Shown piece by piece: positions 14,694-46,526 of a stretch of 64,000 bases of DNA (position 1 is its first letter; each line of letters starts with the position of its first letter). The DNA comes from Leidyana gryllorum EB-2025a. Lineage: Eukaryota; Protista; Apicomplexa. The translations under genes and the position numbers were made by a program. A model generated the notes under the pieces. The model searched no databases and was not told the DNA's origin. It worked only from the letters and a program-made list of their open reading frames with translations. The stretch spans positions 744,001 to 808,000 of the forward strand of contig JBLWGC010000230.1 of assembly GCA_048772705.1 (NCBI GenBank), written 5' to 3'.

Positions 14694-15557
14694 CTACTTA
14701 TGTTGATGAAAATGTTCAACGGCAAGGTCTGAGACAGAGCACAGGGGGTCAAGATCCCGAAATCGCTCGTTGTAGTCCATGCCATATCCAACTATGAACT
14801 TGGGCGGCAGGTCAAATCCGACAAAGTCGGGTTCGAAACCGCACCAGTTAGTAACCCTGGAAAGAACATATCATTTGGCAACCCTGTAAAGTGTAGAACT
14901 CGTACCGTTTCGAGAACAGACACACACAACGAACCGATTTTGCACCGGCATCATGACACATCTGGCTCAAGACACTAAGGGTCTTGCCGGTGTCAACCAA
15001 ATCCTCTACTAGCAATACATCCTTATTTTCGCAAATGGACCTCAACTGATCCACAGTTTTGCTCGTTCGCACGGTGCCCGTGCTGCTCGAGTTGACATAC
15101 GACGATGCCTCAATGTAATGTTCATAGTACACCGATCGTTCGAGGCCTTCGGGAGCCAGTCTGCGGAACAGCAAACGTGTGCACACCCAGTGGGGGGTGG
15201 CTTGAGTAGTTCACCTGTCAATGGTGCGCAATGATTTGATTAATTCGCCATAGAACCTGTTGGCTCCTTTCAAGCAACAGATCAGTTGCAGGCTGTCGAC
15301 CTGTTGGTAGAACTTATAAATCTCTTTCGCCAGTTTCTCAATTCTGTCCCTCAGGAACCCGGCTGGCAAAAGTACTTCTTTGACGTAGGGCTACGTTGAC
15401 GACAATAATTGTGTGCAAGAACGTGAGGGTGGAAACGCGATACCTGATAGTACGATTGAATGCATACAGCATCAATGGGATAGATGTGATTCTCGGAAAT
15501 GTAAATCCCAGGCACAACTCTGCCCCGAGCAACGACGCCAGAGTGGGAATCACTCAT
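14694..15557 (-). CDS. HPRT: Hypoxanthine-guanine(-xanthine) phosphoribosyltransferase
   Basis: RIEKLAKEI, CCLKGA, SSY, VLLVEDLVDTGKTL (PRPP motif), FIVGYGMDYNERFRDL; short GT-AG introns. Confidence 0.95.
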
Positions 15558-15799
15558 CGCTGATGTCTTGGGCACTTTTTTTGCGCTGATAACAGCGGAC
15601 GTTTTGGCGCGGTGTACTCAGGTCCAATTTTCTCCTAAGATTAAGTTGTGCCAGATCAACAACGAAGTTTTTGAGTGAAGAATCGGGTAGAACTGTCGTG
15701 AGCTCCCAGCCACTCATGTCAGCTCCCATAGCCCTAGGAAGCCCAAATTTTTAGCACAGATGTGGTCGCATCAAGGACGGTGCAAGTTGTCTGGGCACA

Positions 15800-16430
15800 C
15801 TCGTGTGCTAACTGTTGAACTTGTCAATTTCGAATGGTCACGCCGCACAGAATTTCCGGGTTTTGTTTCAAGGCGGAGCTTGACCGTCCCATTTTCTCCG
15901 ATCCATCACTTCCCTCCAGTCGGTGACCTCTGCCGGAGGACTTTATATCACAGTTCCAACCTTCGCGTTCGAAACTTGGAGGTCAGTCACTGCCGCATAA
16001 CGACTTCAAAGGACACTTCCGATTTCGCCCATCAAGTGTTAAACTTGATCATCTCGATGGGGAATGTTTCAGGATGACCCACCGCTTTCGGGTTTGCGCC
16101 CGCCACATCTCGGGTCCCGCCTCGAACTGCCTCCGTTCATATGCCAGCCAAGCGTTGAGTGCAGTAGTATCCCATCGGCCTCAAAAATAGACCACAATTG
16201 AACTAACAGCTGACTCAGATATCGAACAACAGCATCGCGCAGCTCTCACAGTCTCTCACAGTACCTCTCAGCCACACAACAGGCAGCTTCTCCAAGTACG
16301 AAGCTGGATGGGGAGGCACCATTGATCAGTGCCAGTGAGATCGCACTCAGAATTGTCGTCACCTCAACAGGACTCTGACGCTCAAAGCTCGCGATCGGTG
16401 TCAAATTGGCATCCCGGTCACATCGAGTCG
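15800..16430 (-). pseudogene. Decayed paralog of the 2-TM coiled-coil partner gene
   Basis: Minus strand reads ELRDAVVRYLSQL|gttagttcaattgtg (cf. ELCDSLVGFLSQL|gtgagtt) and VTDLQVSNAKV, with in-frame stops. Confidence 0.55.
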
Positions 16431-16496
16431 ATAATACATGAAGCCAAAGTTTTCCACATCACATCATCAATGTCGCTATGATCAATCAATACACTC

Positions 16497-18481
16497 TCAT
16501 ACAGTCTCGAAGTGATCCTTTTCCACTTCGGGAAATACTTCTTCGCGTAAACTTGGAGGGCAGACAGTTGGTAACCAAATAGGAGCATTCAAATACTCCA
16601 ATTCCCGAATCCTTTGATCCATCAGCATGCGACCGAACCACCATTCGTCGGTAGAAAGGACGCCAACCGGCTCAAATAGTCCGCCAACAGAAGTTTGAGC
16701 CTCGTCAACTGTCGCTCGCAACATCTCCGAATACCATTTGCTGACGAATAGCTTCGGAACTGCAATGGAATGAGTGTATGGGGAGAGAACGGACTCCGCT
16801 TGAGCACTCTTCTCACGCAGTGGTGGCCACTCTTCGCTGTCGTCAGCAGATTGACCCATCATGACTTTATCCATCTGTTCAGCCGAGCACCCTAAGTATT
16901 TGACCACAGCTCGGAGAGTGGCGTCCGTGTAGAGCCCCGAGACGAGTTCTAATTGGACCTTCGGCCACGGGTACTCCAGAAGCGCTGCAGCTCGAAGGCC
17001 AAACCGAATACGGAGGCCTTTCCGCCGCCAAATAGAGTGACCAACCAGAAACCAGTCTGTCAATTTTGTGATACTCAAAGGTATTCCGGTGACACCGACA
17101 TAATGGATGTCACATTTCTCCATTAAGCGCCGAATCGCCTCCGGTGAGTCCTCTCGCGTGGTGTGAAGACACAGCACACGCACACAATCGGGACGCCAAC
17201 GTAGCGGGGCTGCGTCTTCAGACAGCGCTGCGACGAGCTCCCAGCCCTGCAGAGGTAATTCGATGCGCTCCAAATTTCCAAACGGCAGAGTCCCCATTGA
17301 CTCTTCCGACAGAGTTGGAGTGCAATCGTTGTTGATATAGAGAAGCCGCGTCACCTCTGACCAGCTCGCTGAGTGCAGCTGGCCGGTGGCGCTTAGATAG
17401 GCTGTCTGATCGCTCACCAACCCAATGTATGTCGGAGGGAACACAGCGGGCGGTCCGGTTAGTGGGAGTGCTTCCCACCTGACAGGGGGGGACTCCAGAT
17501 CCTGAGTTCGCGCTAACTGGAACCATGTCAGGTTCGCACGCGCCCGCGTAGCCACAACTCCGTTCCTTTGAGTCTCGTTGACTATCCGTTGGGGAAGTAG
17601 CCTTCCCAAACACGACCTCGAATATAGAAAGTTCCGGCACAGCGGATGCATATTGCGCTCTCGATCGGTCCATTCTCTCTTGAGATAGTCCAACAACCGT
17701 TTCGACCCCCTGCGCTATGCATCACTGAAGGCTGCAACATCGCTCACCTTGCGCAAATTGGCCACGTGAATCCGATTTCATTGTGCCATTCGATTGAATC
17801 GCTGGTCCAATCGCGTGCTATTGGCAAAGATTGCACCAGAGTGGAGGACGTCTTCCAGCCTCCCTCTATCACAGAAGCGGGAACGTCACCATATTTGAAA
17901 ATCCAATACTTGAAGTGAGGTTTCGTCACCGAGACAATGAGGTCATTGGGGCCGTCGCCCACAGCCTGATGCAGAGCCACCGCCATATCATGGCGAATAA
18001 AGGGAAGGTGGTGCCTTCTGACAGCCAGAAACTCCAACATCGGAGCATCAATTTGCAGAGGCCCTCCAGACAGGACGGAATAATTTAAGTCCAAATACTT
18101 CAGTGTGGGAAAACAGAAAGTATATGACTGCCACGACCCCCCACTCGGGAAAGTCACGCCTATGGTCGCCTTCGTCAGCTTGGGCACACCCCATTGGCAC
18201 ATCTTCTGCAGTAGATTAACGACGATGAGATCCATATCATGCATTCCAATCCAGTAGAGCGATTCCAGATGTGGGCACGATCTATGCAGCCATTCTTGGA
18301 ACCAAGAGGCGCGGTGTACCCAGGCCCACTGTCTTGAGGTGAGATGCAATTGATGCGAGCCCAACAACGAACTTTCTGAGTGAAGAACATTGTAGATCTG
18401 TTTGGAGATTGCAGCCACTCTTGTCAGTTCCCATAGCGGCAGGAAGCCCAGAATTTGCGCCCAAATGTGGTCACAGAGCAT
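16497..18481 (-). CDS. F-box/LRR-like protein copy 1 (~650 aa, 2 exons)
   Basis: N-terminal MLCDHIWAQILGFLPLWELTRVAAISKQI is F-box-like; LRR-like CPHLESL, FPTLKYLDL, IDAPMLEFL; 38-nt intron 17710-17747 joins ICAR|GSKRLLDYLK. Confidence 0.8.
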
Positions 18482-19500
18482 TCTTCAGCACTGAAATCCG
18501 CAGGAATTGTCCGCGCACACTCGTGTGCTGACTGAGTGAACTTGCGGGGCGATGTCTTCTGGTCATGCCGCACAGAGTTCCCGCGCATTCTTCCAGCGTG
18601 CAGCTCAAACGAAGCACCGCGTTCCATGTCTCCTTTGTAGAACCCGTCCAGGATCTCGTACTGCTCGGTTTTTGCACGAAGACTGATGTTCTGTTTCCCG
18701 AATGTTTATCAGATCGTTCGTCAGTTCTTTTCAACATATCAGCGGGCAACGTGAAAGATACATTTGTGTAGGGAGGACTGCTTGGGGCTGAACAGCAACG
18801 CAGGAGGTGTGTGCAGATTTGCTTTCAACCAACAGCATAGTGCACGCGGGCTCTTACCAAGTATGGAGCAGAGCTCAGCGGAAATTGTCCTGAGTACGAG
18901 GGAATATCGTACTCTTCTAAAGGGGCACTCCAGATGCTTTTTACAATATAAAGGCCAAACATGATGTTCTGTGCAGTACGGGCCATAAATGATGTCGAAG
19001 ATAAAGTTCTGGTCCCCGTCCCGAGGAATACTAAGCAGACAAAAGTTATTCAATCGCTTGACAATATCTCAATATGATCATCTCATGACAGTTCACTGCA
19101 CTTGCAGTCTCATGAACTAAGTCTGTCACTTGGGCGACTTCAAATCTATGAAAGAAAGCTATTGCGGCCGCGAACTTTGTCGCTTCTCCCAGATCTACTG
19201 ACTATATCACCGCCCTCGCAGTGCTCGGTCGCGGGTGATCGCATCGGGTAATACTCAATGAGGCATCGTGTATATTGCTGTCAACAAGACGCATACGTGG
19301 AGCGGCCGTAGTTGATTGACTGTCTGGCTGCAAAGCCGTTGAGTTGATGGACCCGAGTCATTCGCATCTCCTAACTCCTGCTCGGTCGGCACAACACTCC
19401 TTCTCGCAGCTGGAGCCAGCGCGATCCCACTCGAGGTCTCCGCCGGCCGATCTCCGAACTTTCAGGAGGGACGTTACAGTCGAAGGTCTTCGGGAGGAGG

Positions 19501-20056
19501 TCACTCACCTCCAACCTGTAAACGCGGATGCCCGGACTGTGTTTGCAGATCAGTAACCTCGTCCCGAAGAGCTTGAAGGGTAGTCGTTACCTCCATCTTG
19601 AAATCTAGAAGGCCAGGTACCGACGCCCTAAGAAGTCCATCTGCAGTGGTGTCATCAGTTCGGATATTAGCCACTGCCACTCCAACATTGCGAACGTCAT
19701 TGTCGACGAGCTCGAATCGTTGATGGATCTCATCCCTATGTACTGGGTCTCTGTCAGGACCACCCTCTTGTACCCCGCTTCCACTTCCAGCGCTGTGTTG
19801 CCCCAATTGATGCACTGAGCCAACCGTAAAAAAGACCAATCTGTAAGCCTTAAGGCAATTCGAAGCACAATTGAACTCACGGCAGGCTCAGAGGTCCAAA
19901 CAGATAATCGCGCAAAGCGGCTGCCGCCTCTCTCCGTGACGAAGGCACCACAGATAGTATGTTGACAACACCGATCGATACCACTACGCCAGCAGTAAGG
20001 ATAGTGGCCGCTAGAAATGGGTTTTGCATCCAAAGGCTCGACTGATCCCTTTCCAT
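19501..20056 (-). CDS. 2-TM coiled-coil partner gene, C-terminus truncated by an inversion
   Basis: MERDQSSLWMQNPFLAATILTAGVVV...LSLP|LVFFTVG spliced via gtgagt...ttacag; premature stop inside the inverted segment. Confidence 0.65.
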
Positions 20057-20192
20057 TGGTGTGAAACCGTAGCCGCGATATAACTTTTAAGGAGAAGGAT
20101 TTTGCTTGTCTGCCCGGTCGCATCGAGTCGATAATACATAAAGCCTAAGTTTTCCACATCACATCATCAATGTCGCTATCATCAATACACTC

Positions 20193-22177
20193 TCATACAG
20201 TCTCGAAGCCATCCTTTTCCACTTCGGGAAATATTTCTTCGCGTAAACTCGGAGGACAGACAGTCGGTAACCAAATAGGAGCATTCAAATACTCCAATTC
20301 CCGAATCCTTTGATCCAGCAGCATGCGGCCGAACCACCATTCGTCGGTAGAAAGGACGCCAATCGCCTCGAATAGTCCGCCAACAGAAGTTTGAGCCTCG
20401 TCCAATGTCGCTCCCAACATCTCCGAATACCATTTGCTGACGAATACTTTTGGAACTGCGATGGAATGAGTGTTTGGGGAGAGAATAGACTCCGCTTGAG
20501 CACACTTCTCACGCAGTGGTGGCCACTCTTCGCTGTCGTCAGCAGATTGACCCATCATGACTTTATCGATCTGTTCAGCCGAGCACCCTATGTATTTGAC
20601 CACAGCTCGGAGAGTGGCGTCCGTGTAGAGACCCGAGACGAGTTCTAATTGGACCCTCGGCCACGGGTACTCCAAAAGCGCTGCAGCTCGAAGGCCAAAC
20701 CGAATACGGAGGCCTTTCCGCCGCCAAATAGAGTGACCAACCAGAAACCAGTCTGTCAATTTTGTGATACTCAAAGGTACTCCGGTGACACCGACATAAT
20801 GGATGTCACATTTCTCCATTAAGCGCCGAATCGCGTCCGGTGAGTCCTCTCGCTTGGTGTGAAGACACAGCACACGCACACAATCGGGACGCCAACGCAC
20901 CGGGGCTGCGTCTTCAGACAGCGCTGCGACGAGCTCCCAGCCCTGCAGAGGTAATTCGATGCGCTCCAAATTTCCAAACGGCAGAGTCTCCATTGACTCT
21001 TCCGACAGAGTTGGAGTGCAATCGTTGTTGATATAGAGAAGCCGCGTCACCTCTGACCAGCTCGCTGAGTGCAGCTGGCCGGTGGCGCTTAGATAGGCTG
21101 TGTGATCGGTCACCAACCCAATGTATGTCGGAGGGAACACAGCGGGCGGTCCGGTTAGTGGGAGTGCTCTCCACTTGACAGGGGAGGACTCCAGATCCTG
21201 AGTTCGCGCTAACTGGAACCATGTCAGGTTCGCACGCGCCCGCGTAGCCACAACTCCGTTCCTTTGAGTCTCGTTGACTATCCGTTGCGGATATAGCCAT
21301 CCCACACACGAAGTCGAAGATAGAAAGTTCCGGCACAGCGGATGCATACTGCGCTCTCGATCGGTCCATTCTCTCTTGAGATAGTCCAACAACCGTTTTG
21401 ACCCCCTGCGCTATGCATCATTGAAGGCTGCAACATTGCTCACCTCGCGCAAATTGGCCACGTGAATCCGATTTCATTGTGCCATTCGATTGAATCGCTG
21501 GTCCAATCGCGTGCTATTGGCAAAAATTGCACCAGAGTGGAGGACGTCTTCCAGCCTCCCTCTATCACAGAAGCAGGAACGTCACCATTTTTGAAAATCC
21601 AATACTTGAAATGAGGTTTCGTCACCGAGACAATGAGGTCATTGGGGCCGTCGCCCACTGCCTGATGCAGAGCCACCGCCATATCATGGCGAATAAAGGG
21701 AAGGTGGTGCCTTCTGACAGCCAGAAACTCCAACATCGGAGCATCGATTTGCAGAGGCCCTCCAGACAGGACAGAATCAATTAAGTCCAAATACTTCAGT
21801 GTGGGAAAACAGAAAGTATATGACTGCCACGACCCCCCACTCGGAAAAGTCACGCCTATGGTCGCCTTCGTCAGGTTGGGCACACCCCATTGGCACATCT
21901 TCTGCAGTGCATCAACGACGATGTGATCCTTGTCACTCAGTCCGATCCAATAGAGCGATTCCAGATGTGGGCACGATCTGTGCAGCCATTCTTGGAACCA
22001 AGAGGCGCGGTGTACCCAGGCCCACTGCCTTGAGGTGAGATGCAATTGATGCGAGCCCAACAACGAACTTTCTGAGTGAAGAACATTGTAGATCTGTTTG
22101 GAGATTGCAGCCACTCTTGTCAGCTCCCACAGCGGCAGGAAGCCCAGAATTTGCGCCCAAATGTGGTCACAGAGCAT
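20193..22177 (-). CDS. F-box/LRR-like protein copy 2
   Basis: Near-identical to copy 1, same intron. Confidence 0.8.
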
Positions 22178-23004
22178 TCTTCAGCACTGAAGACCGCAGG
22201 AATTGTCCATGCACACTCGTGTGCTGACTGAGTGAACTTGCGGGGTGATGTCTACTGGTCATGCCGCACAGAGTTCCCGGGCATTCTTCCAGCGTGCAGC
22301 TCAACCGAGGCACTGCGTTCCATGTCTCCTTTGTAGAACCCGTCCAGGATCTCGTACTGCTCGGTTTTTGCACGAAGACTGATGTTCTGCTTCCCGGATG
22401 TTTATCAGATCGTTCGTCAGTTCTTTTCAACATATCAGCGGGCAACGTGAAAGATACATTTGTGTAGGGACGACTGCTTGCGGCTGAACAGCAACGCAGG
22501 AGGTGTGTGCAGATTTGCTTTCATCCAACAGCATAGTGCACGCGGGCTCTTACCAAGGATTGAGCAGAGTCCACAGGCAATTGTCCTGAGTACGAGGGGA
22601 TATCGTACTCTTCTAAAGGGGCATTCCAGATACTTTTTACAATATAAAGGCCAAACATGATGTTCTGTGCAGTACGGGCCATAAATGATGTCGAAGATAA
22701 AGTTCTGGTCCCCGTCCCGGGGAATACTAAGCAGACGAAAGTTATTCAATCGATTGACAATATCTCAATCTGACCACCTCATGACAGTCCACTGCACTTG
22801 CAGTCTCACGAACTAAGTCTGTCAGTTGGGCGACTTCAAATCTATGAAAGCTATTGCCGCCGCGAACTTTGTCGCTTCTCCCAGATGCACTTAGCTACTG
22901 ACTATATCACCGCCCTCGGAGTCCTCGGTCGCCGGTGATCGCATCAGGCAATACTCAATGAGGCATCGTGTACATTGCTCTCAAGAATCTACATTTACTC
23001 GGCG

Positions 23005-23782
23005 CTAGGAGTCATCGATGACTGGACCCGAGTCATTCGCATCTCCTAACTCCTGCTCAGTCGGCACAACACTCCTTCTCGCAGCTGGAGCCATCGCTAT
23101 CCCACTGGAGCCCTCCGTCGGCCGATCTTCAAACACAGTCCGGGCATTCGCGTTTAAAGTTCGGAGATCAGTCACCTCGTCTCGAAGTGCTTGAAGGGTA
23201 CCCGTAACATCCCTCCTGAAAGTTCGGAGATCAATCACCTCATCCCGAAGAGCTTGAAGGGTACCCGTAACATCCCTCCTGAAAGTTTGCAGATCAGTCA
23301 CCTCGTCCCGAAGAGCTTGAAGGGTAGCCGTAACATCCCTCCTGAAATCTAAAAGGCCAGTTACCGACGCCCTAAGAAGTCCATCTGCAGTGGTGTTATC
23401 AGTTCGGATATTAGCCACTGCCACTCCAACATTGCGAACGTCATTCTCGACGCGCTCGAATCGTTGATGGATCTCATCCCTATTCACTGGGTCTCTTTCA
23501 GGGCCTCCTCTTCCAGCGCTTTGCTGCCCCGATTGATGCACTGAGCCAACCGTAAGAAAGACCAATCTATAAGCCTTAAGTCAATTCGAAGCACAACCGA
23601 ACTCACAGCTGACTCAGAAATCCAACAAGAGAATCGCACAGCTCGGCTGCCACCTCTCTCCGTGACGAAGGCTCCACAGATAGTATGTTGACAACATTGA
23701 TCAATACCACTACGCCAGCAGTAGGGATAGCGGCCGCTAGAAATGGGTTTTGCATCCAAAGGCTCGACTGATCCCTTTCCAT
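23005..23782 (-). CDS. 2-TM coiled-coil partner gene, intact (~245 aa) with 20-aa repeats
   Basis: Exon 1 MERDQ...LVGFLSQL, intron gtgagt...ttatag (~23567-23606), exon 2 with (FRRDVTGTLQALRDEVTDLRT)-type repeats. Confidence 0.72.
23160..23350 (-). repeat. 60-nt coding tandem repeat x3
   Basis: cgtaacatccctcctgaaa recurs at 60-nt spacing. Confidence 0.9.
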
Positions 23783-23922
23783 TGGTGTGAAACCGTAGCC
23801 GCGATATAACTTTTCAGGAAAAGGATTCCCCCTGTCTCCCCGGTCACATCGAGTCGACAACACATAAAGCCAAAGTTTTCCACATCACATCATCAATGTC
23901 GCTATGATCAATCAATACACTC

Positions 23923-25907
23923 TCATACAGTTTCGAAGCCATCCTTTTTCATTTCGGGAAATACTTCTTCGCGTAAACTCGGCGGACAGATAGTCGGTAA
24001 CCAGATACGAGCATTAAAATACTCCAATTCCCGAATCCTTTGATCCAGCAGCATGCGACCGAACCACCATTCGTCGGTAGAAAAGAGGCCAACCGGCTCG
24101 AATAGTCCGCCAACAGAAGTTTGAGCCTCGTCCAATGTCGCTCCCAACATCTCCGAATACCATTGGCTGACGAATAGCTTTGGAACTGCAATGGAATGAG
24201 TGGCTGGGGAGAGAACGGACTCCGCTTGAGCACTTTTCTCACGCAGTGGTGGCCATTCCTCGCTGTCGTCAGCAGATTGACCCATCATGACTTTATCGAT
24301 CTGTTCAGCCGAGTACCCTATGTATTTGACCACAGCTCGGAGAGTGGCGTCGGTGTAGAGGCCCGAGACGAGTTCTAATTGGACCCTCGGCCACGGGTAC
24401 TCCAGAAGCGCAGCAGCTCGAAGGCCAAACCGAATACGGAGGCCTTTCCGCCGCCAAATAGAGTGACCAACCAGAAACCAGTCTGTCAATTTTGTAATAC
24501 TCAAAGGTACGCCGGTGACACCGACATAATGGATGTCACATTTCTCCATTAAGCGCCGAATCGCCTCCGGGGAGTCCTCTCGCTTGGTGTGAAGACACAG
24601 CACACGCACACAATCGGGGCGCCAACGTAGCGGGGCTGCGTCTTCAGACAGCGCTGCGACGAGCTCCCAGCCCTGCAGAGGTAATTCGATGCGCTCCAAA
24701 TTTCCAAACGGCAGAGTCCCCATTGACTCTTCCGACAGAGTTGGAGTGCAATCGTTGTTGATATAGAGAAGCCGCGTCACCTCTGACCAGCTCGCTGAGT
24801 GCAGCTGGCCGGTGGCGCTTAAATAGGCTGTGTGATCGGTCACCAACCCAATATATGTTGGAGGGAACACAGCGGGCGGTCCGGTTAGTGGGAGTGCTTT
24901 CCACCTGACAGGGGAGGACTCCAGATCCTGAGTGTGCGCTAACTGGAACCATGTCAGGTTCGCACGCGCCCGCGTAGCCATAACTCCGTTCCTTTGAGTC
25001 TCGTTGACTATCCGTTGAGGATATAGCCATCCCAAACACGACCTCGAATATAGAAAGTTCCGGCACAGCGGATGCATATTGCGTTCTCGATCGGTCCATT
25101 CTCTCTTGAGATAGTCCAACAACCGTTTCGACCCCCTGCGCTATGCATCACTGAAGGCTGCAACATCGCTCACCTCGCGCAAATTGGCCACGTGAATCCG
25201 ATTTCATTGTGCCATTCGATTGAATCGCTGGTCCAATCGCGTGCTATTGGCAAAGATCGCACCAGAGTGGAGGACGTCTTCCAGCCTCCCTCTATCACAG
25301 AAGCGGGAACGTCACCATTTTTGAAAATCCAATACTCAAAATGAGGTTTCGTCACCGAGACAATGAGGTCATTGGGGCCGTCGCCCACAGCCTGATGCAG
25401 AGCCACCGCCATGTCATGCCGAATAAAGGGAAGGTGGTGCCTTCTGACAGCCAGAAACTCCAACATCGGAGCATCGATTTGCAGAGGCCCTCCAGACAGG
25501 ACGGAATGATCTAAGTCCAAATACTTCAGTGTGGGGAAACAGAAAGTATGTGACTGCCACGACCCCCCACTCGGAAATGTCACACTTAAGGTCGCCTTCG
25601 TCAGTTTGGGCACACCCCATTGGCACATCTTCTGCAGTAGATCAACGACGATGCGATCCTTGTCCCTCAGTCCGATCCAGTAGAGCGATTCCAGATGTGG
25701 GCACGATCTGTGCAGCCATTCTTGGAACCAAGAGGCGCGGTATACCCAGGCCCACTGCTTTGAGGTGAGATGCAATTGATGCGAGCCCAACAACGAACTT
25801 TCTGAGTGAAGAACATTGTAGATCTGTTTGGAGATTGCAGCCACTCTTGTCAGCTCCCATAGCGGCAGGAAGCCCAGAATTTGCGCCCAAATGTGGTCAA
25901 TGAGCAT
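23923..25907 (-). CDS. F-box/LRR-like protein copy 3
   Basis: Near-identical to copy 1 (starts MLIDHIW), same intron. Confidence 0.8.
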
Positions 25908-26699
25908 TCTTCAGCACCGAAGACCGCAGGAATTGTCCATGCACACTCGTGTGCTGACTGAGTGAACTTGCGGGGCGATGTCTTCTGGTCATGCCGCACG
26001 GAGTTCCCGCGCATTCTTCCAGCGTGCAGCTCAACCGAAGCACTGCGTTCTATGTCTCCATCGTATAACCCGTCCAAGATCTCGTACTGCTCGGTTTTTG
26101 CACGAAGACTGATGTTCTGCTTCCCGAATGTTTATGAGTTCGTTCGTCAGTTCTTTCCAACATATCAGTGGGCAACGTGACAAGATACATTTGTGTAGGG
26201 ACGATTGCTTGGAGCTGAATAGCAGGGCGGGAGTGTGTGCAGATTTGCCTTCATCCAACAGCAGCAGATTTGATACAACAGGATAGTGCACACGGGCCAG
26301 TATTGAGCAGAGCTCAGCGGAAATTTGTCCTGAGTACGATGGGATGTCGTACTCTCCTAGTTAGGCACTCCAGATACTTTAACAATATGTAAGCCAAACA
26401 TGATGTTCTGTGCAGCACGACACTAAGCAGACGAAACTCTCTAATCGGTATTTCAACCTGACCATATGTGTCCCCTATTCGAATGACTGTGGACTGCACT
26501 TGCAGTGCTCCAAACTGAGTTAGTCCTCGAGGCCGGTCTGCCGAAAGCTTTAGTTGACTCGCTACCTCTGTCGAGATTTGCCAGGTAAGGTTATTCAATT
26601 ATTATATCACTGCCCTAAGAGTTCTGTAACACTTGTTGACGCAGAGTGTAAATTGCTCTCAACCCTCTTCTTTATCAATGTAGGCTCATCTGCACATTC

Positions 26700-27340
26700 A
26701 TGTGTGTTCTGCCCCAAAAAGTCGTTGATCCTGATGGATGTCCGACATCCCCCTCTGCTCGGCTCCATTGGATTTCGGCTCCCTTCGGTCCCCGGATCAC
26801 TGCTTTTGGCACCGGGGTCAGGCTGGAAGTGGAGGCCTCCGCCCCAGAACGCTGAGGCGTGACATTCGCGTTCGATGGGGGAGTTCAGTCACCTCCGTGC
26901 AAAGAGTCCGAACTGTAGTCTTGAGGTTCCAGTGTCCCTCTTGAGGATCACCCGCTGCGCCCGGGGAACTTCGAACGATAGGGTCAACGTTCTCGCATCG
27001 ACTGTTGAACTCAAGCTTCTTAATTGGCCAGTTCTCGTCCGCTAGACCTCGAGCCCCGCCGCCTCTCCCAGCCCCGTGCTGCCCTTACTCACCAATGCAG
27101 CCAAGTGTTGCGTACTGACTTTCATTAAACTTAATTCCGCATCCCGCGGCTCAAATATGACCTCAGAGACACCCAGCCGGCAGCTTCTCCAAGTACGAAG
27201 CTGGATGGGGAGGCACCGTTGATCAGTGCCAGTGAGATTGCACTCAGAATTGTTGTCACCTCAACGAGATTCTGACGCTCAAAGCTCCGTATCGGTGTCA
27301 AATTCTCATCCCAGTCACATCGGGTTAACAACACATGAAG
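26700..27340 (-). pseudogene. Decayed paralog of the partner gene
   Basis: Matches 16270-16430 at nucleotide level; TVRTLCTEVTEL..SNANV relic of the coiled-coil repeat, with frameshifts and stops. Confidence 0.55.
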
Positions 27341-27381
27341 CCAAACACCACATCATCAATGTCGCTATCATCAATACACTC

Positions 27382-29365
27382 TCATACAGTCTCGAAGCCA
27401 TCCTTTTCCACTTCGGGAAATACTTCTTCGCGTAAACTTGGAGGACAGACAGTCGGTAACCAAATAGGAGCATTCAAATACTCCAGTTCTCGAATCCTTT
27501 GATCCATCAGCATGCGACCGAACCACCATTCGTCGGTAGAAAAGAGGCCAATGGGCTCAATAGTCCGCCAACAGAAGTTTGAGCCTCGTCCAATGTCGCT
27601 CCCAACATCTCCGAATACCATCTACTGACGAATACCTTTGGAACTGCAATGGAATGAGTGTTTGGGGAGAGAATGGACTCCGCTTGAGCACTCTTCTCAC
27701 GCAGTGGTGGCCACTCTTCGCTGTCGTCAGCAGATTGACCCATCATGACTTTATCGATCTGTTCAGCCGAGTACCCTATGTATTTGACCACAGCTCGGAG
27801 AGTGGCGTCCGTGTAGAGGCCCGAAACGAGTTCTAATTGGACCTTCGGCCACGGGTACTCCAGAAGCGCTGCAGCTCGAAGGCCAAACCGAATACGGAGG
27901 CCTTTCCGCCGCCAAATAGAGTGACCAACCAGAAACCAGTCTGTCAATTTTGTGATACTCAGAGGTACTCCGGTGACACCGACATAATGGATATCACATT
28001 TCTCCATTGAGCGCCGAATCGCCTCCGGTGAGTCCTCTCGCGTGGTGTGAAGACACAGCACACGCACACAATCGGGACGCCAACGTAGCGGGGCTGCGTC
28101 TTCAGACAGCGCTGCGACGAGCTCCCAGCCCTGCAGAGGTAATTCGATGCGCTCCAAATTTCCAAACGGCAGAGTCCCCATTGACTCTTCCGACAGAGTT
28201 GGAGTGCAATCGTTGTTGATATAGAGAAGCCGCGTCACCTCTGACCAGCTCGCTGAGTGCAGCTGGCCGGTGGCGCTTAAATAGGCTGTGTGATCGGTCA
28301 CCAACCCAATGTATGTTGGAGGGAACACAGCGGGCGGTCCGGTTAGTGGGAGTGCTTTCCACCTGACAGGGGGGGACTCCGGATCCTGAGTCCGCGCTAA
28401 CTGGAACCATGTCAGGTTCGCACGCGCCCGCGTAGCCACAACTCCGTTCCTTTGAGTCTCGTTGACTATCCGTTGGGGAAATAGACTTCCCAAACACGAC
28501 CTCGAATATAGAAAGTTCCGGCACAGCGGATGCAGATTGCGCTCTCGATCGGTCCATTCTCTCTTGAGATAGTCCAACAACCGTTTCGACCCCCTGCGCT
28601 ATGCATCATTGAAGGCTGCAACATTGCTCACCTCGCGCAAATTGGCCACGTGAATCCGATCTCATTGTGCCATTCGATTGAATCGCTGGTCCAATCGCGT
28701 GCTATTGGCAAAGATTCCGCCAGAGTGGAGGACGTCTTCCAGCCTCCCTCTATCACAGAAGCGGGAAGGTCATGAATTTTGAAAATCCAATATTTAAATT
28801 GGGGTTTCATCACCGAGACAATGAGGTCATTGGGGCCGTCGCCCACAGCCTGATGCAGAGCCACCGCCATATCATGGCGAATAAAGGGAAGGTGGTGCCT
28901 TCTGACAGCCAGAAACTCCAACATCGGAGCATCAATTTGCAGAGGCCCTCCAGACAGGACGGAATAATTTAAGTCCAAATACTTCAGTGTGGGGAAAGTG
29001 AAAGTATATGACTGCCACGGCCCCCCACTCGGAAAAGTCACGCCTATGGTAGCCGTCGTCAGTTTGGGCACACCCCATTGGCACATCTTCTGCAGTAGAT
29101 CAACAACGATGCGATCCTTGTCACTCAGTCCGATCCAATAGAGCGATTCCAGATGTGGGCACGATCTGTGCAGCCACTCTTGGAACCAAGAGGCGCGGTG
29201 TACCCAGGCCCACTGCCTTGAGGTGAGATGCAATTGATGCGAGCCTAACAACGAACTTTCTGAGTGAAGAACATTGTAGATCTGCTTGGAGATTGCAGCC
29301 ACTCTTGTCAGCTCCCATAGCGGCAGGAAGCCCAGAATTTGCGCCCAAATGTGGTCACAGAGCAT
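27382..29365 (-). pseudogene. F-box/LRR-like protein copy 4 with a 1-nt frameshift near the C-terminus (pseudogene or sequencing error)
   Basis: + strand reads gctcaatagt at ~27558 versus ctcaaatagt/ctcgaatagt in copies 1-3; the C-terminal ~60 aa are in another frame. Confidence 0.7.
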
Positions 29366-29999
29366 TCTTCAGCACTGAAATCCGCAGGAATTGTCCGCGC
29401 ACACTCGTGTGCTGACTGAGTGAACTTGCGGGCCGATGTCTTCTGGTCATGCCGCACAGAGTTCCCGCGTATTGTTCCAGTGTGCAGCTCAAACGAAGCA
29501 TCGCGTTCCATGTCTCCCTAGTGGAACCCGTCCAAATTATCGTACTCATCGGTTTCAGCACGATAAGTGACGGGCTGCTCAAAGATATAGTGACTCAATA
29601 TCAGTGAAAGCATGATAGTTTTGTGATTTGCTGAGGCACATTCGAGTAGCGAAATCAGCTGAGGAGCCATAAGGGTCCCTTTTCAGCATTGTTCCTCACC
29701 TTTGGTAGCACGTCTTGTCCATCAATGAATTGCAACTGGTGGCGGGTTCAGCTCATGGAAGACCAACGAAGCCGAGAAGACTTTTCTGATGCATCACGAT
29801 TTCGTACTCTGTCAATTGCGCCGTCCATGGCACCGAACTCCGTTGCTTCGCCTCAGATACGGATCTTCAGTGATTATATAAGTGCGCTCGGAGTTCTCGG
29901 TCGCGGGTAGTGATGGCACCAGTTAAAACTCAACGAGGTGGACTGTACATTACTCTCACTTCTGGTTGGCCTGCGTTTCTTGCTCACATTCTGCTTGTG

Positions 30000-30300
30000 T
30001 CATTGATTGACCTTCAGGGTAAAAAGTTGTTCTGGTGGTGATGGATCGGCGTCAGCTCCCTCTTGACCTCTTCGCAGTCCCCACATTAGCGCTCGCGGAA
30101 TCGACCACCTCTTCGCTGAGCCACTCCGTCTCCGGCCGCAGATCGGAAATTCGGAAATGACAGTCACGCGTTGCGGGTTGGATATTTGAAGGCTAGGTAC
30201 TGCCGCGTGACAAGTTCCGAGGACAGCTGCTGCACCAAGATTGAAATTCAATCCACTGGACGGGGAGTGTCTCGGGACAACTCACGACTGCAAAAGCTCA
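30000..30300 (-). pseudogene. Highly diverged partner-gene relic closing the array
   Basis: VPSLQISNPQRVTV resembles VTDLQVSNAKVGTV; follows a spacer block homologous to 19170-19280. Confidence 0.4.
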
Positions 30301-30643
30301 GTCGAAGGCATCTGTGTCAATTTAGGAGTGCGAAAGAAGGGGTGATTGGATGCGACGCCACGCCACGCCAGGCGGATTGCCTCGGCCTTGAGCTTCATTC
30401 ATCATGCAACGTTGTGGTGCGTACGGTTGTTCAGACCCGGAGAGTTGGGTCGAGATCAACACATATCGGTCGACATCGTGGACTCGGTGTGTAGCGGCCG
30501 AAGTGCTCTAGGCAGAGAAAATGCTTACCTCTGAGCGGTAAAAACTTGAAACTCCCGGTTGAGGAATGGCTTTTTGCTCTGCAATGACCATATCCAACTT
30601 TGAGGGTGAGTGAAGTGATAATTGAATGTTTGTGGCACATAAA

Positions 30644-31721
30644 TCATTCCAACTTGGCAAAAGCGGGCATGATCGCCTTGGCATAAGGCTTGATGGGTCC
30701 GGTTTCACTACGTTCGCTGCGTTTGCCTTGCGTTTTAACCCGTAGTTCGTGCTGGCGTTTGTGGGAAAGCCCGAGATTGCGTCTGACTTGAGCCCGCATG
30801 GCGGTGGGTGAGAGGTAATATCCATTTTTCCATAGCGTCTTGCCTCCGAAAGATTGATCAAAGATTCTGATGGGGTCGAGGACTAGTCTGGGGCCGACCT
30901 CCACGAGGGTTTGTTTGTCAATGGTTGAGACGAATTTATCGCTGAAGATTTGATAATGTCTGAACCAAATCTTGTTGTCTGCCCAGAAGAAGGACATGAC
31001 GTGATCGTGGAAGGGTTTGGCTTTGGGATGGCAGCGAGGGGTGCCCCAGCTTTGGATGAACATCTCTTTGAGAAGCCGAAGGGGAGCAAACTCGTGGAAG
31101 TGAGAGTCAAAGAGGAGCAGCGGTCGGCTGTACATAATGTGGTTCCCCCGAAAGTTCATCTCTCCCATTGTATGGACTGAAAGGAGGGGAGCATTGATTG
31201 TAGGGCGGCTCGCAGATTGAACTCACTGTTCAGAACTTGAAATTTGACAGAAGGCCCCTCTGGAGCTTTCGCCATCCACAGGTACAAATCAGTTCCCTTC
31301 TTCGCCTCAAAGTAAAGGACGTTATTACAGCTGCGCAGCGAAAGACGCGGAAATGAATTGAGGATCGTTGAGAGGAACTGACTCACTTGGCTAATTCGGC
31401 CATTTCATTGATCTCATCTAACGACTGACTCTTCTCCCATTTGGCTTCAGTTTTGTGATGAGGCAGCATTTTCTTGAAGTCCTCCAATAGGTGACGATGG
31501 GCCGCATTAATACCTCGACTCGCAAAGACGAGAGTTCGTTGTTTATTGGTCCAACGTGTTGCCGGATGCCCAGCTTCATACTCCTTATCATTCAGGAGAT
31601 ATGGATCCGCTAACGTTGGGTCCTCCTCGTCCTCTGCCATAGTCTCCTCCACCACTTTTTCAGCCTCCTTCTCCTCCGCTACTGCGCCACCAGTCTTCTT
31701 CGCTTTGGTACCCTTCCCCAT
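30644..31721 (-). CDS. BRX1: Ribosome biogenesis Brix-domain protein, 3 exons
   Basis: WTNKQRTLVFASRGI..RHLLED...LPHHK, LYFEAKK.DLYLW..GPSVKF, SRPLLLFD, KPFHDHV, IWFRHYQI, LVEVGPRLVLDPIRIF..SFGG. Confidence 0.95.
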
Positions 31722-31739
31722 TGTCAAAAAAAAAGACTA

Positions 31740-37023: not shown

Positions 37024-38760
37024 CTAGTAATCCATACCGCCAGCAAAGTGCTCATCGGTCACTGGCTGCTGCTGTTCACGAGCCTCGGTCTCCGGTGGGA
37101 CCTCAACGTCATCCAAGAACTCGGCATCCACCGCCTCGCCACCGCCTCCGTATTGAGAGTACGCAGCCGCTCCAGCTGCTCCCACACCAACAACTCCAGC
37201 TGCTGCAGCTCCGATCACCACCGTCTGGTTCCAACCCTCCTCAGTAGTGGTGGTAGTCGTCGCCTCAGTGGTAGTCGGCTCTGTGATAGGCGGCTTTGTC
37301 ACAGGTGGTTGTGTGGTCGGTGCCACAGTCGGTGCCACAGTCGGTGCTACAGACGGAGCCACAGTCGGTGCAGTAGTAGGAGCCACTGTGGGTACCGGGG
37401 TACCCTCAATTGGAACTGTCACCACGCCTTGTGTGGTAGTTGTGGTGGTGGTCGGAGTTGTTGTGGTCGTCGGAGTTGTTGTGGTGGTCGGAGTTGTGGT
37501 GGTTGTTGGAGTCGTAGTGGTGGTTGGGGTCGTCGTGGTGGTCGGAGTTGTTGTGGTGGTCGGAGTTGTTGTGGTGGTCGGAGTCGTCGTTGTTGTTGGA
37601 GTCGTGGTGGTCGTCGCAGTCGTGGTGGTCGGAGTTGTGGTGGTCGGAGTTGTGGTGGTCGTCGGAGTCGTGGTGGTCGTCGGAGTCGTGGTGGTCGTCG
37701 GAGTTGTTGTGGTGGTCGGAGTCGTCGTTGTTGTTGGAGTCGTGGTGGTCGTCGGAGTCGTGGTGGTCGTCGGAGTTGTTGTGGTTGTTGGAGTCGTAGT
37801 GGTGGTTGGGGTCGTCGTGGTGGTCGGAGTTGTGGTGGTTGTGGTGGTCGTCGTGGTGGTTGTGGTCGTAGTGGTAGTTGTGGTGGTCGTTGTGGTCGTT
37901 GTTGTTGGAGTTGTGGTCGGCTTGACAGTGGTGGTTTCCTCGAATGCGCCCGTATCCGGCTCACACACATCATAGTTGTGAGTACAGTACTTGGGACCGG
38001 CAAGATGAAGATGAGATTCCCAGACACAGGACTTGTCGTGACCCTTGCAGGGACGGCAGTTGTAGTAGCCGGGGGTATTGCAGGTATATGTCATCCCAAT
38101 GTTACACCAGTTGGCATTGATGCTGACACCGGGCATAGTGCTCTGGGCGGCGGCATTGTTGAGATGGTCGCGTGTCTTGAGCGCGCACTCTTTAGTCGCG
38201 ATCTTCCAGAAGAAACCAGCGCACTTATCATTCTTTTGGCACTCAGTCTGGCAGGCTGCCGCGCTGTCGGTGATGACAAACTCATCATCAATGCCAAATC
38301 GTCGATCTTCAACATATCCGTGAATCCATCCACTGAAACATTCACCCTTCCCTTCCTGGACCAAACAATTGGTTTCAAACTCCGCAACCAAATCGCTGGG
38401 GGCGCTTTGACCTTTATCACGCCACTCCTGGCACAACGATTGGCACTCCTTGTTGTCCTTTCCAAGTCCACGTGAGACCACATGTTGACAGCGCGGTGCG
38501 GGACTGCTGCCGTCGTCCGAGTTCTCCATACAGAATCGTCTCTCGGACGTATCCTTAGTACCTGCGAGCCTGTTGCAGCAGGTATCGATCGTTGGTTGGC
38601 AGAGATGTTCGGTCCAACCGATCAAACAAGCACTCGCGTTCCAGCTGGGGTGAGTCGTGCAAACACTGCAGATCCTGTTATCATTTGGGTCAGGAGCCAG
38701 ACATATATCGGTCTGCGCGGCCGAATAGCCCAATATCACTGCGATTGTCGCCAACTTCAT
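37024..38760 (-). CDS. Adhesin 4: 8-Cys module, PAN variant, PTTTTT mucin, TM, tail
   Basis: 578 aa ORF with signal peptide; SAAACQTECQKNDKCAGFFW; tail VDAEF...EHFAGGMDY. Confidence 0.9.
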   Translation of the reverse strand: MKLATIAVILGYSAAQTDICLAPDPNDNRICSVCTTHPSWNASACLIGWTEHLCQPTIDTCCNRLAGTKDTSERRFCMENSDDGSSPAPRCQHVVSRGLGKDNKECQSLCQEWRDKGQSAPSDLVAEFETNCLVQEGKGECFSGWIHGYVEDRRFGIDDEFVITDSAAACQTECQKNDKCAGFFWKIATKECALKTRDHLNNAAAQSTMPGVSINANWCNIGMTYTCNTPGYYNCRPCKGHDKSCVWESHLHLAGPKYCTHNYDVCEPDTGAFEETTTVKPTTTPTTTTTTTTTTTTTTTTTTTTTTTTTTPTTTTTPTTTTTPTTTTTPTTTTTPTTTTTPTTTTTPTTTTTPTTTTTPTTTTTPTTTTTPTTTTPTTTTATTTTTPTTTTTPTTTTTPTTTTTPTTTTTPTTTTTPTTTTTPTTTTTPTTTTTPTTTTTTTQGVVTVPIEGTPVPTVAPTTAPTVAPSVAPTVAPTVAPTTQPPVTKPPITEPTTTEATTTTTTEEGWNQTVVIGAAAAGVVGVGAAGAAAYSQYGGGGEAVDAEFLDDVEVPPETEAREQQQPVTDEHFAGGMDY

Positions 38761-40436: not shown

Positions 40437-42086
40437 TCATCGAACCTCAAAGGTACCATCGGCATTCGGACTCAACGGGGCCGTGTCCTCCAAATCAGTC
40501 AGTTGAGTCCGGAAAAACTCACTCTCCAAACCCGCATCCTCCGCTTGACTCACTCTTCTGTACCCATACACCGCTCCAGCTCCACAAAGCAACGCCCCCA
40601 CCACAATCGCTGCACCCGCTATCGCTCCCAATTCATTCTTCTCCGCCTTGGTGCTCAACGACAGTGTCATATCTGTGGTCGTTCGTGTCTCTGTGCTACT
40701 CGACTCTGAAGTGCTCTCTGTGCTGCTTGCCGTCACAGGCTCAGTCGGTGGCAGAGTCGGGGGGACACCACTGCCCTCAGTCGTCGTCCCATCGGTAGAG
40801 CTGCTGGCAGTCGAAGTCTCTTCGGTAGAACTATCCTCAGACGATGTCTCTTCAGTGGATGTCTCCTCGGTTGAGGTGTCTTCAGTTGAGGTCTCCTCAC
40901 TGGATGTCTCCTCACTGGATGTCTCCTCACTTGAGGTCTCCTCACTCGATGTCTCCTCACTCGATGTCTCCTCACTCGAGGTCTCTTCACTCGAGGTTTC
41001 CTCACTCGACGTCTCCTCACTCGAGGTCTCTTCACTCGAGGTCTCTTCACTCGAGGTTTCCTCACTCGACGTCTCCTCACTCGACGTCTCTTCAGTTGAG
41101 GTCTCCTCACTGGAGGTCTCCTCACTGGAGGTCTCCTCACTGGAGGTCTCCTCACTTGAGGTCTCCTCAGACGATGTCTCTTCAGTTGAGGTCTCCTCAG
41201 ACGATGTCTCTTCAGTCGATGTCTCTTCAGTCGATGTCTCTTCAGTCGATGTCTCTTCAGACGATGTCTCCTCAGTTGAGGTCTCTTCAGTTGATGTCTC
41301 TTCAGTCGAAATCGGCGGTTCGGGTGTTGTGACTGGCTCTATTGGTCGGCAATAATCGAAGGGGTGGGCACAATGTCGGGGTCCCGAGACACTAAGTCCA
41401 GTGCTTGGTCGCCAGATACATCTTTGAGTACCTTCGCAGTGCATACACTCTCCAGTTGCACATACACTTTTGATGTCATCCCGACACCAGTCTTTGTTGA
41501 AAGTGTTGGCGTTGCCGATGATTTGTTCAGCGGCTTCTTGGAGCATTGTGACAGATTTGAGGTAACAGAATCTTTCTTCATAGTAGAAGGCCTCGCAGCC
41601 TGGGTATGATTGGCAATCTGCTTGGCAGGCGACGGGAGAGAGAGAAGCATAGCCAATCTCGGCAACACTGCAGTTTCCGGGTTTATTTCGTCCGTGTGCG
41701 AAGGGACTGAAGCACTCCGTGTCAGTTGCATCCAGCTCCTTGCAGTTATTGAGGTACTCTGCAAATTTGTCGGTGGAGGCTGAGGCCGCGAGCACCAATT
41801 GTGTGCACAACTGTTGACAATCTTTGTTCGTCCATCCATCAGCGACAGCCGCACTTATAGAGCAGTTCATGTCTTCCGGAGTGTACACGAGATCTCCCAA
41901 GGAGGGGGAGTTCCGACAGCTCGTGACGCTTGAGAAACATTGCTGTGTGTCACCCGTCGCCAATTGGCAGCGGCCATCCGGGAGGACATTACCGCAACGG
42001 GTACAGTCACTCCCACTTTTGACATAACAATGTTTCCTGGCGAGACATCCTACAACCCATAACGGTAAGGACCATACGGTTCTCAT
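40437..42086 (-). CDS. Adhesin 6: PAN variant with (SSEET)n stalk
   Basis: 549 aa ORF; SPVACQADCQSYPGC; 15-nt repeat stalk; tail ESEFFRTQLTD. Confidence 0.88.
   Translation of the reverse strand: MRTVWSLPLWVVGCLARKHCYVKSGSDCTRCGNVLPDGRCQLATGDTQQCFSSVTSCRNSPSLGDLVYTPEDMNCSISAAVADGWTNKDCQQLCTQLVLAASASTDKFAEYLNNCKELDATDTECFSPFAHGRNKPGNCSVAEIGYASLSPVACQADCQSYPGCEAFYYEERFCYLKSVTMLQEAAEQIIGNANTFNKDWCRDDIKSVCATGECMHCEGTQRCIWRPSTGLSVSGPRHCAHPFDYCRPIEPVTTPEPPISTEETSTEETSTEETSSEETSTEETSTEETSTEETSSEETSTEETSSEETSSEETSSEETSSEETSSEETSTEETSSEETSSEETSSEETSSEETSSEETSSEETSSEETSSEETSSEETSSEETSSEETSSEETSSEETSTEDTSTEETSTEETSSEDSSTEETSTASSSTDGTTTEGSGVPPTLPPTEPVTASSTESTSESSSTETRTTTDMTLSLSTKAEKNELGAIAGAAIVVGALLCGAGAVYGYRRVSQAEDAGLESEFFRTQLTDLEDTAPLSPNADGTFEVR
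40815..41310 (-). repeat. 15-nt coding repeat (S[ST]EET)n
   Basis: gtctcctcactcgag-type units. Confidence 0.95.
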
Positions 42087-45081: not shown

Positions 45082-46526
45082 TCATCTCGCTCTCGGGGAA
45101 TCGACATCATAGCCGCCTGTCTCCTGCTCCAGACGCGCCTGTTCTTCGATATCGGTCAATTGAGTCCGGAAAAACTCTGTATCCATTTCGCCCGTTCTGC
45201 TGTCATGCGCCTTCTTGGCGCCATACAATGCTCCACCGCCAATCAACACCGCCCCAACTGCTATAGCCGCACTCGATAGCTTACTGTCCTTCTCATCCCG
45301 TTTTGTTGTCAACGACACAGTGAACTCTGTCGTCGTTGTTGTCGTCGAAGACGTCGACGACGAAAAAGTTGACTCGTCCGGCTCGGTGGAAGGCGGCAAC
45401 GGGGGCAACGGCGGACCCACAGTCGACTCTTCCGTCGTGGTTGTGGTCGGAGTCGTCGTTGTTGTTGGGGTCGTGGTGGTGGTCGGAGTCGTCGTTGTTG
45501 TTGGGGTCGTGGTGGTGGTCGGAGTCGTCGTTGTTGTTGGGGTCGTGGTTGTGGTCGGAGTCGTCGTTGTTGTTGGGGTCGTGGTGGTGGTCGGAGTCGT
45601 TGTGGTGGTCGGAGTTGTTGTCGTCGAGGTAGTCGTCGTGGTCGGAGTCGTTGTGGTCGGAGTGGTGGTGGTGGTGCTTGAAGTCAAGTTAGGGACAAAC
45701 TCGTCCGGATTACACCAGTTTGGCCTCCCGCTATCTACGAGGGGTCCTTAAAAGACAGAGTGGAGGGGGAAAGCAGCTTACCGGGACAGTAGCGTGGCCC
45801 GCTTATGGCGGTTGGGCGGGACCAAAAACAGGGGCGATGCCCCGAACAGTTGACAGCGTTTGAAGTTCCCGCTGCGTAGTGCTCGCACCAGTCTTGGTCA
45901 AAGGTGGAGCTGTCAGATAGGTCGATGGACCAGGCTTTCTGGAACATGTCATTAGACTTGAGATAGCAAACTTGATTCTCCCAGGTGAAAGCCACACAGT
46001 CAGCCACCTTCTGGCATTCCAATTGGCAATCAGCAATACTGCTGGTGAAAAAGTACCCATCCATAGAGTGATTTGGCCAACTCCGACGCCCGATTATATA
46101 CTGACCCGACACACAGGGAGATCCCCAAGCGATCTCCATGCAGTTATTTCGGTATGTGGTCTGGTCGGCTGCAGTCTCGGGGGGACATATGTCTCGACAT
46201 TGCTGGTTTGTCAAGCCTTTGTTCCGTGATACCACATCCGAGCAACTCCAGACTATCCGTGTTTCCTGAGTGCGATTGAGGGAGTCTGAGAGCACTCGAG
46301 CGAGACATCGCTTCGGTTTTGAGGTTTTCGCGCAGCACTCCAGATAGCTCGCGTAGCAATCCTCCGGGGTCAAACCCAATTCGTCTTTGGAAGAAATCTT
46401 TGTATCACTCCGTGCGCAACGACTATCTTCATATGATTCGACTACGTAACACGTATCCGATGAACGATCACTGGCACCCTGGGCAATGGCCCAAAATGCC
46501 AAACCAACGGCCCAAAGTCGGCCCAT
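45082..46526 (-). CDS. Adhesin 9: PAN variant with PTTTTT stalk, 2 exons
   Basis: SIADCQLECQKVADC; intron ~45747-45781 joins RYCP|GPLVDSG; tail DTEFFRTQLTDIEE. Confidence 0.85.

Follow-up and report, generated by a model that had tools for sequence, protein, structure and literature searches.

A window of 64,000 nucleotides (nt) from the genome of Leidyana gryllorum (C230:744001–808000) contains, from approximately 16.2 to 29.6 kilobases (kb), four head-to-tail copies of a unit built around an F-box/LRR-like gene and a small gene with a predicted intron, which we refer to as the partner. Self-comparison of the window gave unit periods, start to start, of 3,696, 3,730 and 3,458 nt, and whole-unit nucleotide identities of 93–95%, spacers included. 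A constant period and high identity that extends through the spacers identify a tandem array, and comparable tandem organization is found in at least 12 other F-box arrays of the genome, the whole assembly of which (15.5 megabases, 237 contigs) was searched. The F-box gene and the partner lie within one duplication unit, which largely bears out the tandemly amplified two-gene cassette described in an earlier note on this sequence.

The F-box/LRR-like gene and its predicted spliced partner

The F-box gene of each unit lies on the minus strand and has two exons: an open reading frame (ORF) of 245 amino acids (aa), a 38-nt intron with borders AG/GTGAGC...CGCAG/G and an ORF of 399 aa, giving a product of about 650 aa. 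The position of the intron is conserved across all paralogous arrays examined, at a length of 38–39 nt. Residues 2–37 of exon 1 match the F-box profile PF00646 with an E value of 0.005 and 17.1 bits, below the cut-off of 20.5 bits. All 19 paralogues tested match an F-box profile (PF00646 or PF12937) at the equivalent site, with a best E value of 2 × 10−4 and none reaching the cut-off, and 8 of the 19 weakly match PF24758, an LRR model built on plant F-box proteins. Exon 1 gave nothing meaningful when its profile was run against solved structures, and exon 2 matched no Pfam family and nothing in a word-based protein search. Membership of the F-box family is probable on this profile evidence. 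The genome has one Skp1 gene (C230:901522–901665; 92 bits, above the cut-off), which is on the same contig as the array.

The earlier note took the F-box copies to be almost identical. They are under constraint, yet not near-identical: their proteins share 92–96% identity and synonymous divergence (dS) is 0.05–0.12, with ratios of non-synonymous to synonymous divergence (dN/dS) of 0.26–0.49 in exon 1 and 0.35–0.77 in exon 2. The unit 4 copy is frameshifted by a 1-nt deletion that puts its last 56 codons out of frame. Two further features recur in every unit. An alternative-frame ORF of 151 aa lies inside exon 2 of each copy (17218–17673, 20914–21369, 24644–25099 and 28102–28557); its codon usage scores no higher than that of off-frame sequence, and it is most likely a by-product of the conservation of its host gene. 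The approximately 200 nt that are 5′ of each F-box start codon form the best-conserved non-coding stretch of the unit and are 75–80% identical to the same position in the arrays on contigs C9 and C2, both strands alike; this block is probably a shared promoter or 5′ untranslated region.

The partner had been proposed as a hidden gene that becomes visible only after splicing, with two hydrophobic helices followed by repeats, and the analysis upheld this model at 23782–23005. The intact copy is on the same strand as the unit 3 F-box gene and starts 144 nt past its stop codon. Splicing of a phase-2 intron yields a frame of 245 codons, compared with a maximum of 135 in 20 shuffles of the spacer and 68 on the opposite strand. 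The hydropathy of the spliced product shows two membrane-type segments, the second of which is split by the intron. Exon 2 alone was predicted by AlphaFold2 to form one continuous helix (residues 29–146, about 118 residues; predicted local distance difference test (pLDDT) 85–97), with disorder on either side. The predicted product is therefore of the long-helix membrane type, in which membrane helices precede an uninterrupted helix with a heptad-compatible repeat. Searches and folds of the partner were run exon by exon, and the spliced frame was read for length and hydropathy only. Against Pfam, the partner exons from the window and from contigs C9 and C186 returned only sub-threshold coiled-coil noise; exon 2 had no match in a word-based protein search and only sub-threshold, unrelated bacterial clusters in ESM Atlas.

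The proximity of the two genes raises the question of whether the partner exons are instead alternative 3′ exons of the F-box transcript, which would produce a membrane-anchored F-box isoform similar to ZEEL-1. The two genes share a strand, the partner follows the F-box stop codon by only 140–200 nt, and ZEEL-1 shows that fusions of membrane domains to adaptors exist (PMC3144186). However, the partner has an ATG of its own, placed at a conserved distance; several stop codons separate this ATG from the F-box stop codon, and no in-frame donor–acceptor pair that bypasses the F-box stop was found in a non-exhaustive check by reading the sequence. We regard this explanation as very improbable.

The other spacers of the window hold the remains of further partners. 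The copy after unit 2 is broken by an inversion, as the earlier note had stated, and also by insertions and deletions (indels). Three more copies had been listed as decayed, which is correct only in part: the spacer downstream of unit 1 retains a relic, whereas downstream of unit 4 the coding sequence has been deleted or replaced, and upstream of unit 4 (29563–30550) there is only a trace of the partner 3′ flank, 88 nt long and 75% identical, at 29871–29958. The spacers after units 1 and 4 are of a second, shortened type from which the start of the partner is deleted. A fifth partner copy upstream of unit 4 was considered and rejected, as 29563–30550 contains no partner coding sequence.

The partner in other F-box arrays

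As a protein query against the whole genome, the window partner matches only two local copies. The close paralogues of the F-box gene, by contrast, number at least 36 and are spread over 12 or more tandem arrays, and with dozens of more distant members the family reaches about 90 genes. Reading the spacers of other arrays directly revealed an equivalent small gene in the same place, diverged beyond sequence recognition. The C9 model is 212 aa in length; on C186, all four units carry intact models of 211–240 aa. On both contigs, 160–200 nt separate the F-box stop codon from the start of the partner, the second hydrophobic segment is interrupted by a phase-2 intron of 40 nt, and the exon that comes next is helical; the window and C9 introns are visibly homologous. 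Models from the window, C9 and all C186 units span 211–245 aa, compared with a maximum of 166 aa in shuffled controls. In the C2 array, exon 2 is homologous and is preceded by a tentative phase-2 intron of 44 nt; two of three copies are open. A phase-0 model for C2 from an automatic search was dropped in favour of the homologous phase-2 junction.

Searches with the C9, C186 and C2 versions recovered additional copies, all of them broken and all beside F-box genes or relics (Table 1). Every partner copy found lies 140–220 nt downstream of an F-box gene or relic, so that the two form a linked pair, and genome searches found no partner elsewhere. The earlier note had asked whether the two families occur unlinked, and the answer is asymmetric: the partner is never away from an F-box gene or its relic, but at least 60 of the approximately 90 F-box family members are without a partner. 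The long spacers of C204, C47, C202 and C136 and the short-spacer arrays yielded no partner relics at E < 0.1. Spacers in the short-spacer clade (C36, C173, C133 and C121) have no room for a partner, and those of distant F-box subfamilies (C205, C35, C109, C177, C224, C33 and C51) are too short for a second gene.

The same two-gene unit occurs in three other array lineages (C9/C33/C213, C2 and C186/C36); the linkage is therefore old and not an accident of this locus, and the shared architecture makes the cassette ancestral to one F-box subfamily. In a tree of F-box exon 2, with a midpoint root only, partner-bearing arrays fall on both sides of the deepest split, for which the simplest history would be one origin and several losses. 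The small membrane-protein gene has been part of the repeat unit of one F-box subfamily from a time before the arrays of that subfamily separated. New to this analysis are the homology of the partner between arrays, its distribution over the F-box tree and the count of intact and decayed copies.

A solitary cassette was also observed outside the arrays, at C33:125500–131500, where an F-box gene that retains only residues 114–394 of exon 2 is followed by a C9-type partner with a stop codon in exon 1. This unit suggests that the cassette has also been dispersed, and not merely amplified.

Selection on the partner and explanations for the linkage

At F-box silent sites, the window, C9 and C186 differ from each other by 0.42–0.60 (proportion of differing synonymous sites, pS). 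Partner proteins from the same three sources are only 21–33% identical, with a proportion of differing non-synonymous sites (pN) of about 0.5. The frame, intron and architecture of the small gene have been kept, whereas its sequence has turned over almost completely. Stop codons make up 4.7% of neighbouring spacer DNA, at which rate the chance survival of 210 open codons has a P of approximately 4 × 10−5 per lineage. Codon usage, scored after training on long ORFs elsewhere in the window, peaks in the proposed frame of partner exon 2 in four lineages (0.10–0.24), compared with 0.04–0.14 for F-box exons and negative values for control spacer ORFs. In exon 1 of the C186 copies, five changes are synonymous and one is non-synonymous. 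These observations make it likely that the partner is a real gene, selected for its frame and architecture rather than for its sequence, and we infer that it is expressed and functional.

The opposite view is that the partner is non-functional today, either as a decaying relic from the ancestral duplication unit or as a chance ORF, with the intact copies merely not yet hit. It would account for the dN/dS of around 1 or higher in exon 2 and between the C9 and C33 partners, for the breakage of about half of the copies, some at less than 10% divergence, and for an orphan without a family. It would have to explain how a spliced frame with the same intron phase has stayed open in three to four lineages across which silent sites differ by 42–60% and spacers cannot be aligned, at the chance per lineage given above, why codon usage is gene-like in the right frame, and why the ratio of synonymous to non-synonymous changes in C186 exon 1 is 5:1. 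In the C2 array, exon 2 has accumulated 58 differences over 405 nt with no indels or stop codons. Several broken copies are less than 10% diverged from an intact sister, which shows that decay sets in fast once constraint is lost. A partner without present function is, in our judgement, unlikely.

The C2 exon is also the most divergent stretch of its spacer, a local hypervariable spot. It differs at 14% of sites with pN/pS of about 2, whereas exon 1 differs by 2%, and exon 1 and most of the spacer are 94–99% identical between units; this contrast is statistically marginal, and the numbers are small here as in the other partner comparisons. The helical tail of the partner may be under diversifying selection.

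Such a pattern is what would be expected if the two genes formed a functional module, in which the F-box protein recognizes the adjoining membrane protein—as the adaptor and substrate of a Skp1–cullin–F-box (SCF) ligase, as antidote and toxin, or as a self/non-self pair—and the two duplicate together and co-evolve fast. The strictness and age of the linkage fit this proposal, given that the partner is never found without an F-box gene or relic and that the unit is older than the deepest split in the subfamily, and so does a partner that evolves extremely fast yet stays open. Precedents exist in Caenorhabditis tropicalis (PMC12680543) and in PEEL-1 (PMC3144186). Against it, most F-box family members have no partner, and neither Pfam, the word search nor ESM Atlas revealed similarity to any known toxin. 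The copies also contradict the earlier suggestion that antidotes are kept while toxins decay: C186 retains four of four partners, both genes have decayed at C33 and at the C36 locus near 72 kb, and in the window it is an F-box gene, that of unit 4, that is frameshifted. Overall, we consider a functional module of this general kind unlikely. Its more specific form, a co-evolving recognition or toxin–antidote module in which a two-pass protein with a hypervariable helical tail would be checked by the adjoining F-box adaptor and would spread by duplication, is more doubtful still.

Comparison with characterized systems shows how far the resemblance goes. In C. tropicalis, klmt-1/kss-1 and their relatives are F-box antidotes linked to toxins that duplicate as a module (PMC12680543). 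As in the window, the F-box protein is fast evolving and barely recognizable, it belongs to a large clustered family, a second gene adjoins it and the pair duplicates (PMC12680543). The linked gene in C. tropicalis, however, is a paralogue of a tRNA synthetase, and experiments demonstrated toxicity, antidote action and Skp1 binding (PMC12680543); here it is an orphan membrane protein known from sequence alone, the systems are unrelated in sequence, and most F-box members are without a partner. PEEL-1 is a small membrane toxin with four passes that is paired with an antidote resembling a ubiquitin-ligase adaptor (PMC3144186). What the peel-1/zeel-1 pair shares with the window cassette is the tight linkage of a small, novel membrane protein to a substrate adaptor of ubiquitin ligases that comes from an expanded family (PMC3144186). 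ZEEL-1, by contrast, is similar to ZYG-11, a CUL-2 adaptor, and has its own six-pass membrane domain that supplies the antidote activity (PMC3144186), whereas the window adaptor is F-box-like and has no membrane domain, and the window partner has two passes and a long helix instead of four passes. The nematode element is single-copy and polymorphic for insertion or deletion (PMC3144186), and the window holds a tandem array. The parallel to peel-1/zeel-1 drawn in the earlier note has no basis in sequence or family: no homology of the F-box gene or the partner to PEEL-1/ZEEL-1 or to KLMT/KSS was found with Pfam, the word search or ESM Atlas.

The F-box expansions of nematodes and plants (Thomas 2006, cited as reference 27 in PMC12680543) are likewise large, lineage-specific tandem-array families in which the N-terminal F-box is conserved and the rest of the protein varies. 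They are not described with a co-duplicated small membrane-protein gene in each unit, and the window organism is a gregarine-type apicomplexan. A ratio of one potentially harmful product to several linked F-box genes, here one intact partner and three to four F-box genes, is not without parallel. At the plant S-locus, to which PMC12680543 also refers, an S-RNase is linked to many S-locus F-box genes within a recombination-suppressed haplotype, and the RNase is cytotoxic. The window units, by contrast, are simple tandem repeats, and their partner has no known activity.

We favour, with modest confidence, an explanation by descent, in which an F-box gene and a small membrane-protein gene that evolves fast were duplicated together and their copies were differentially retained. 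The analysis establishes the structure of the unit, its linkage, its age and the way in which copies have decayed; on present evidence, the linkage reflects such co-duplication rather than a demonstrated functional pairing. In this scheme, unequal crossing-over would have multiplied an old two-gene unit of a gregarine-type apicomplexan into the young tandem array. One gene of the unit would encode a lineage-specific F-box/LRR-like protein of about 650 aa from a family of at least 90 copies; the other would be a small orphan of about 245 aa, with a two-helix membrane hairpin, a long helix that includes three 21-aa repeats, and an acidic tail that is disordered. This unit would be ancestral to the one F-box subfamily that includes the window array and those of C9/C33/C213, C2 and C186/C36, the small gene having been lost from the other arrays. 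The partner would change at almost the pace of silent sites while its open frame, intron and architecture persist. Each array would retain one or more working copies, and we propose that surplus copies decay because one suffices, whereas the F-box copies would mostly be maintained by selection.

Several points weigh against co-duplication of a functional partner by descent. Linkage this strict and this old could also be a sign of functional coupling. The dN/dS of partner exon 2 (about 0.6–1.8, and around 1 or above in most comparisons) would, taken alone, also fit a pseudogene. Only 8 of approximately 16 recognizable partner copies are intact. The fold predicted for C186 exon 2 is helical with low confidence (pLDDT 45). 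Introns of about 40 nt are the norm in this genome, the F-box intron included, so that only phase and position are informative. Finally, no homologue of the partner outside this genome was found in Pfam, the word search or ESM Atlas.

The partner is the first concrete candidate for a protein that these adaptors might target or work with, in the form of one gene pair with Skp1 on the same contig. If the two genes are functionally coupled, the idea that F-box expansions breed linked toxin–antidote or recognition modules, drawn from nematodes and plants, would apply to apicomplexans as well; such a module, the first of its kind in an apicomplexan, might have driven the expansion to about 90 F-box genes. 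If they are not coupled, the array would be a clean case of differential retention within a tandem duplication, and the partner an orphan gene that cannot be traced by sequence search even inside one genome.

Array features and surroundings

The features of the array and the partner copies on other contigs are listed in Table 1.

Table 1 Features of the F-box array and of partner copies elsewhere in the genome
Feature	Position	Strand	Description
F-box N-terminal relic, fifth copy	15606–15770	−	Decayed; 57% identity, 3 stops; downstream edge of array
Partner relic in shortened spacer downstream of unit 1	16193–16245	−	End of exon 1 and mutated donor site
F-box/LRR-like gene, unit 1	16497–18481	−	Exon 1 ORF 18481–17744, 38-nt intron, exon 2 ORF 17696–16497; weak F-box Pfam matches
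Broken partner copy after unit 2	19345–20056	−	Exon 1 open, 81% identical; exon 2 matches residues 1–95, then inversion, tail out of frame; indels
Inverted segment, ~100 nt	19449–19551		Homologous to repeat region of partner exon 2, 23124–23232
F-box/LRR-like gene, unit 2	20193–22177	−	ORFs and intron
Block directly upstream of F-box ATG	22178–22375	−	Equivalents at 18482–18679, 25908–26105 and 29366–29563
Partner exon 2	23005–23566	−	Rest of membrane helix 2, predicted long helix (exon residues 29–146), disordered acidic tail; stop 23005–23007
Three tandem 63-nt (21-aa) repeats in partner exon 2	23156–23347	−	From repeat comparison
Partner intron	23567–23606	−	40 nt, GTGAGT..TAG, phase 2; position, phase and length homologous to C9 and C186 partner introns
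Partner exon 1	23607–23782	−	ATG at 23782; short N terminus, predicted membrane helix 1 and first half of membrane helix 2; best codon-usage frame
F-box/LRR-like gene, unit 3	23923–25907	−	ORFs; immediately upstream of intact partner
Start of 'type B' spacer downstream of unit 4	27160–27384	−	Resembles 16263–16499; partner start deleted, coding sequence replaced
F-box/LRR-like gene, unit 4	27385–29365	−	Frameshifted; 1-nt deletion near 27558, ORF stop at 27507
C2 partner exon 2, two units (array C2:283500–293499)	C2:284077–284478; C2:291252–291650		68% protein identity
C9 upstream partner copy	C9		Frameshift
C33 partner copy	C33:127442–128084		Stop in exon 1; beside 5′-truncated F-box gene
C213 partner copy	C213		Broken
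C36 partner copy	C36:72961–73519		Broken; beside F-box pseudogene

Many F-box arrays run into contig ends (C9, C2, C186 at both ends, C204, C47 at both ends, C36, C173, C133 and C213). The 92-kb contig C186 has two-unit arrays at its two ends in opposite orientation, and in the tree their copies pair from one end to the other. A search for telomere repeats at the ends of array-bearing contigs found none, so these termini probably reflect either breaks in the assembly within arrays or a segmental duplication in inverted orientation.

The window array is flanked by housekeeping genes that encode a phosphoribosyltransferase (14848–15186) and a Brix-domain protein (30644–31727), and these, together with the tiny introns, are consistent with a compact eukaryote genome. 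Elsewhere in the window there are long, imperfect tandem repeats of short period, at 37429–37920, 40777–41309, 45434–45675, 46900–48372, 49505–50705 and 55365–55552. The repeats across 37–51 kb resemble one another and probably lie within low-complexity, repeat-rich genes.

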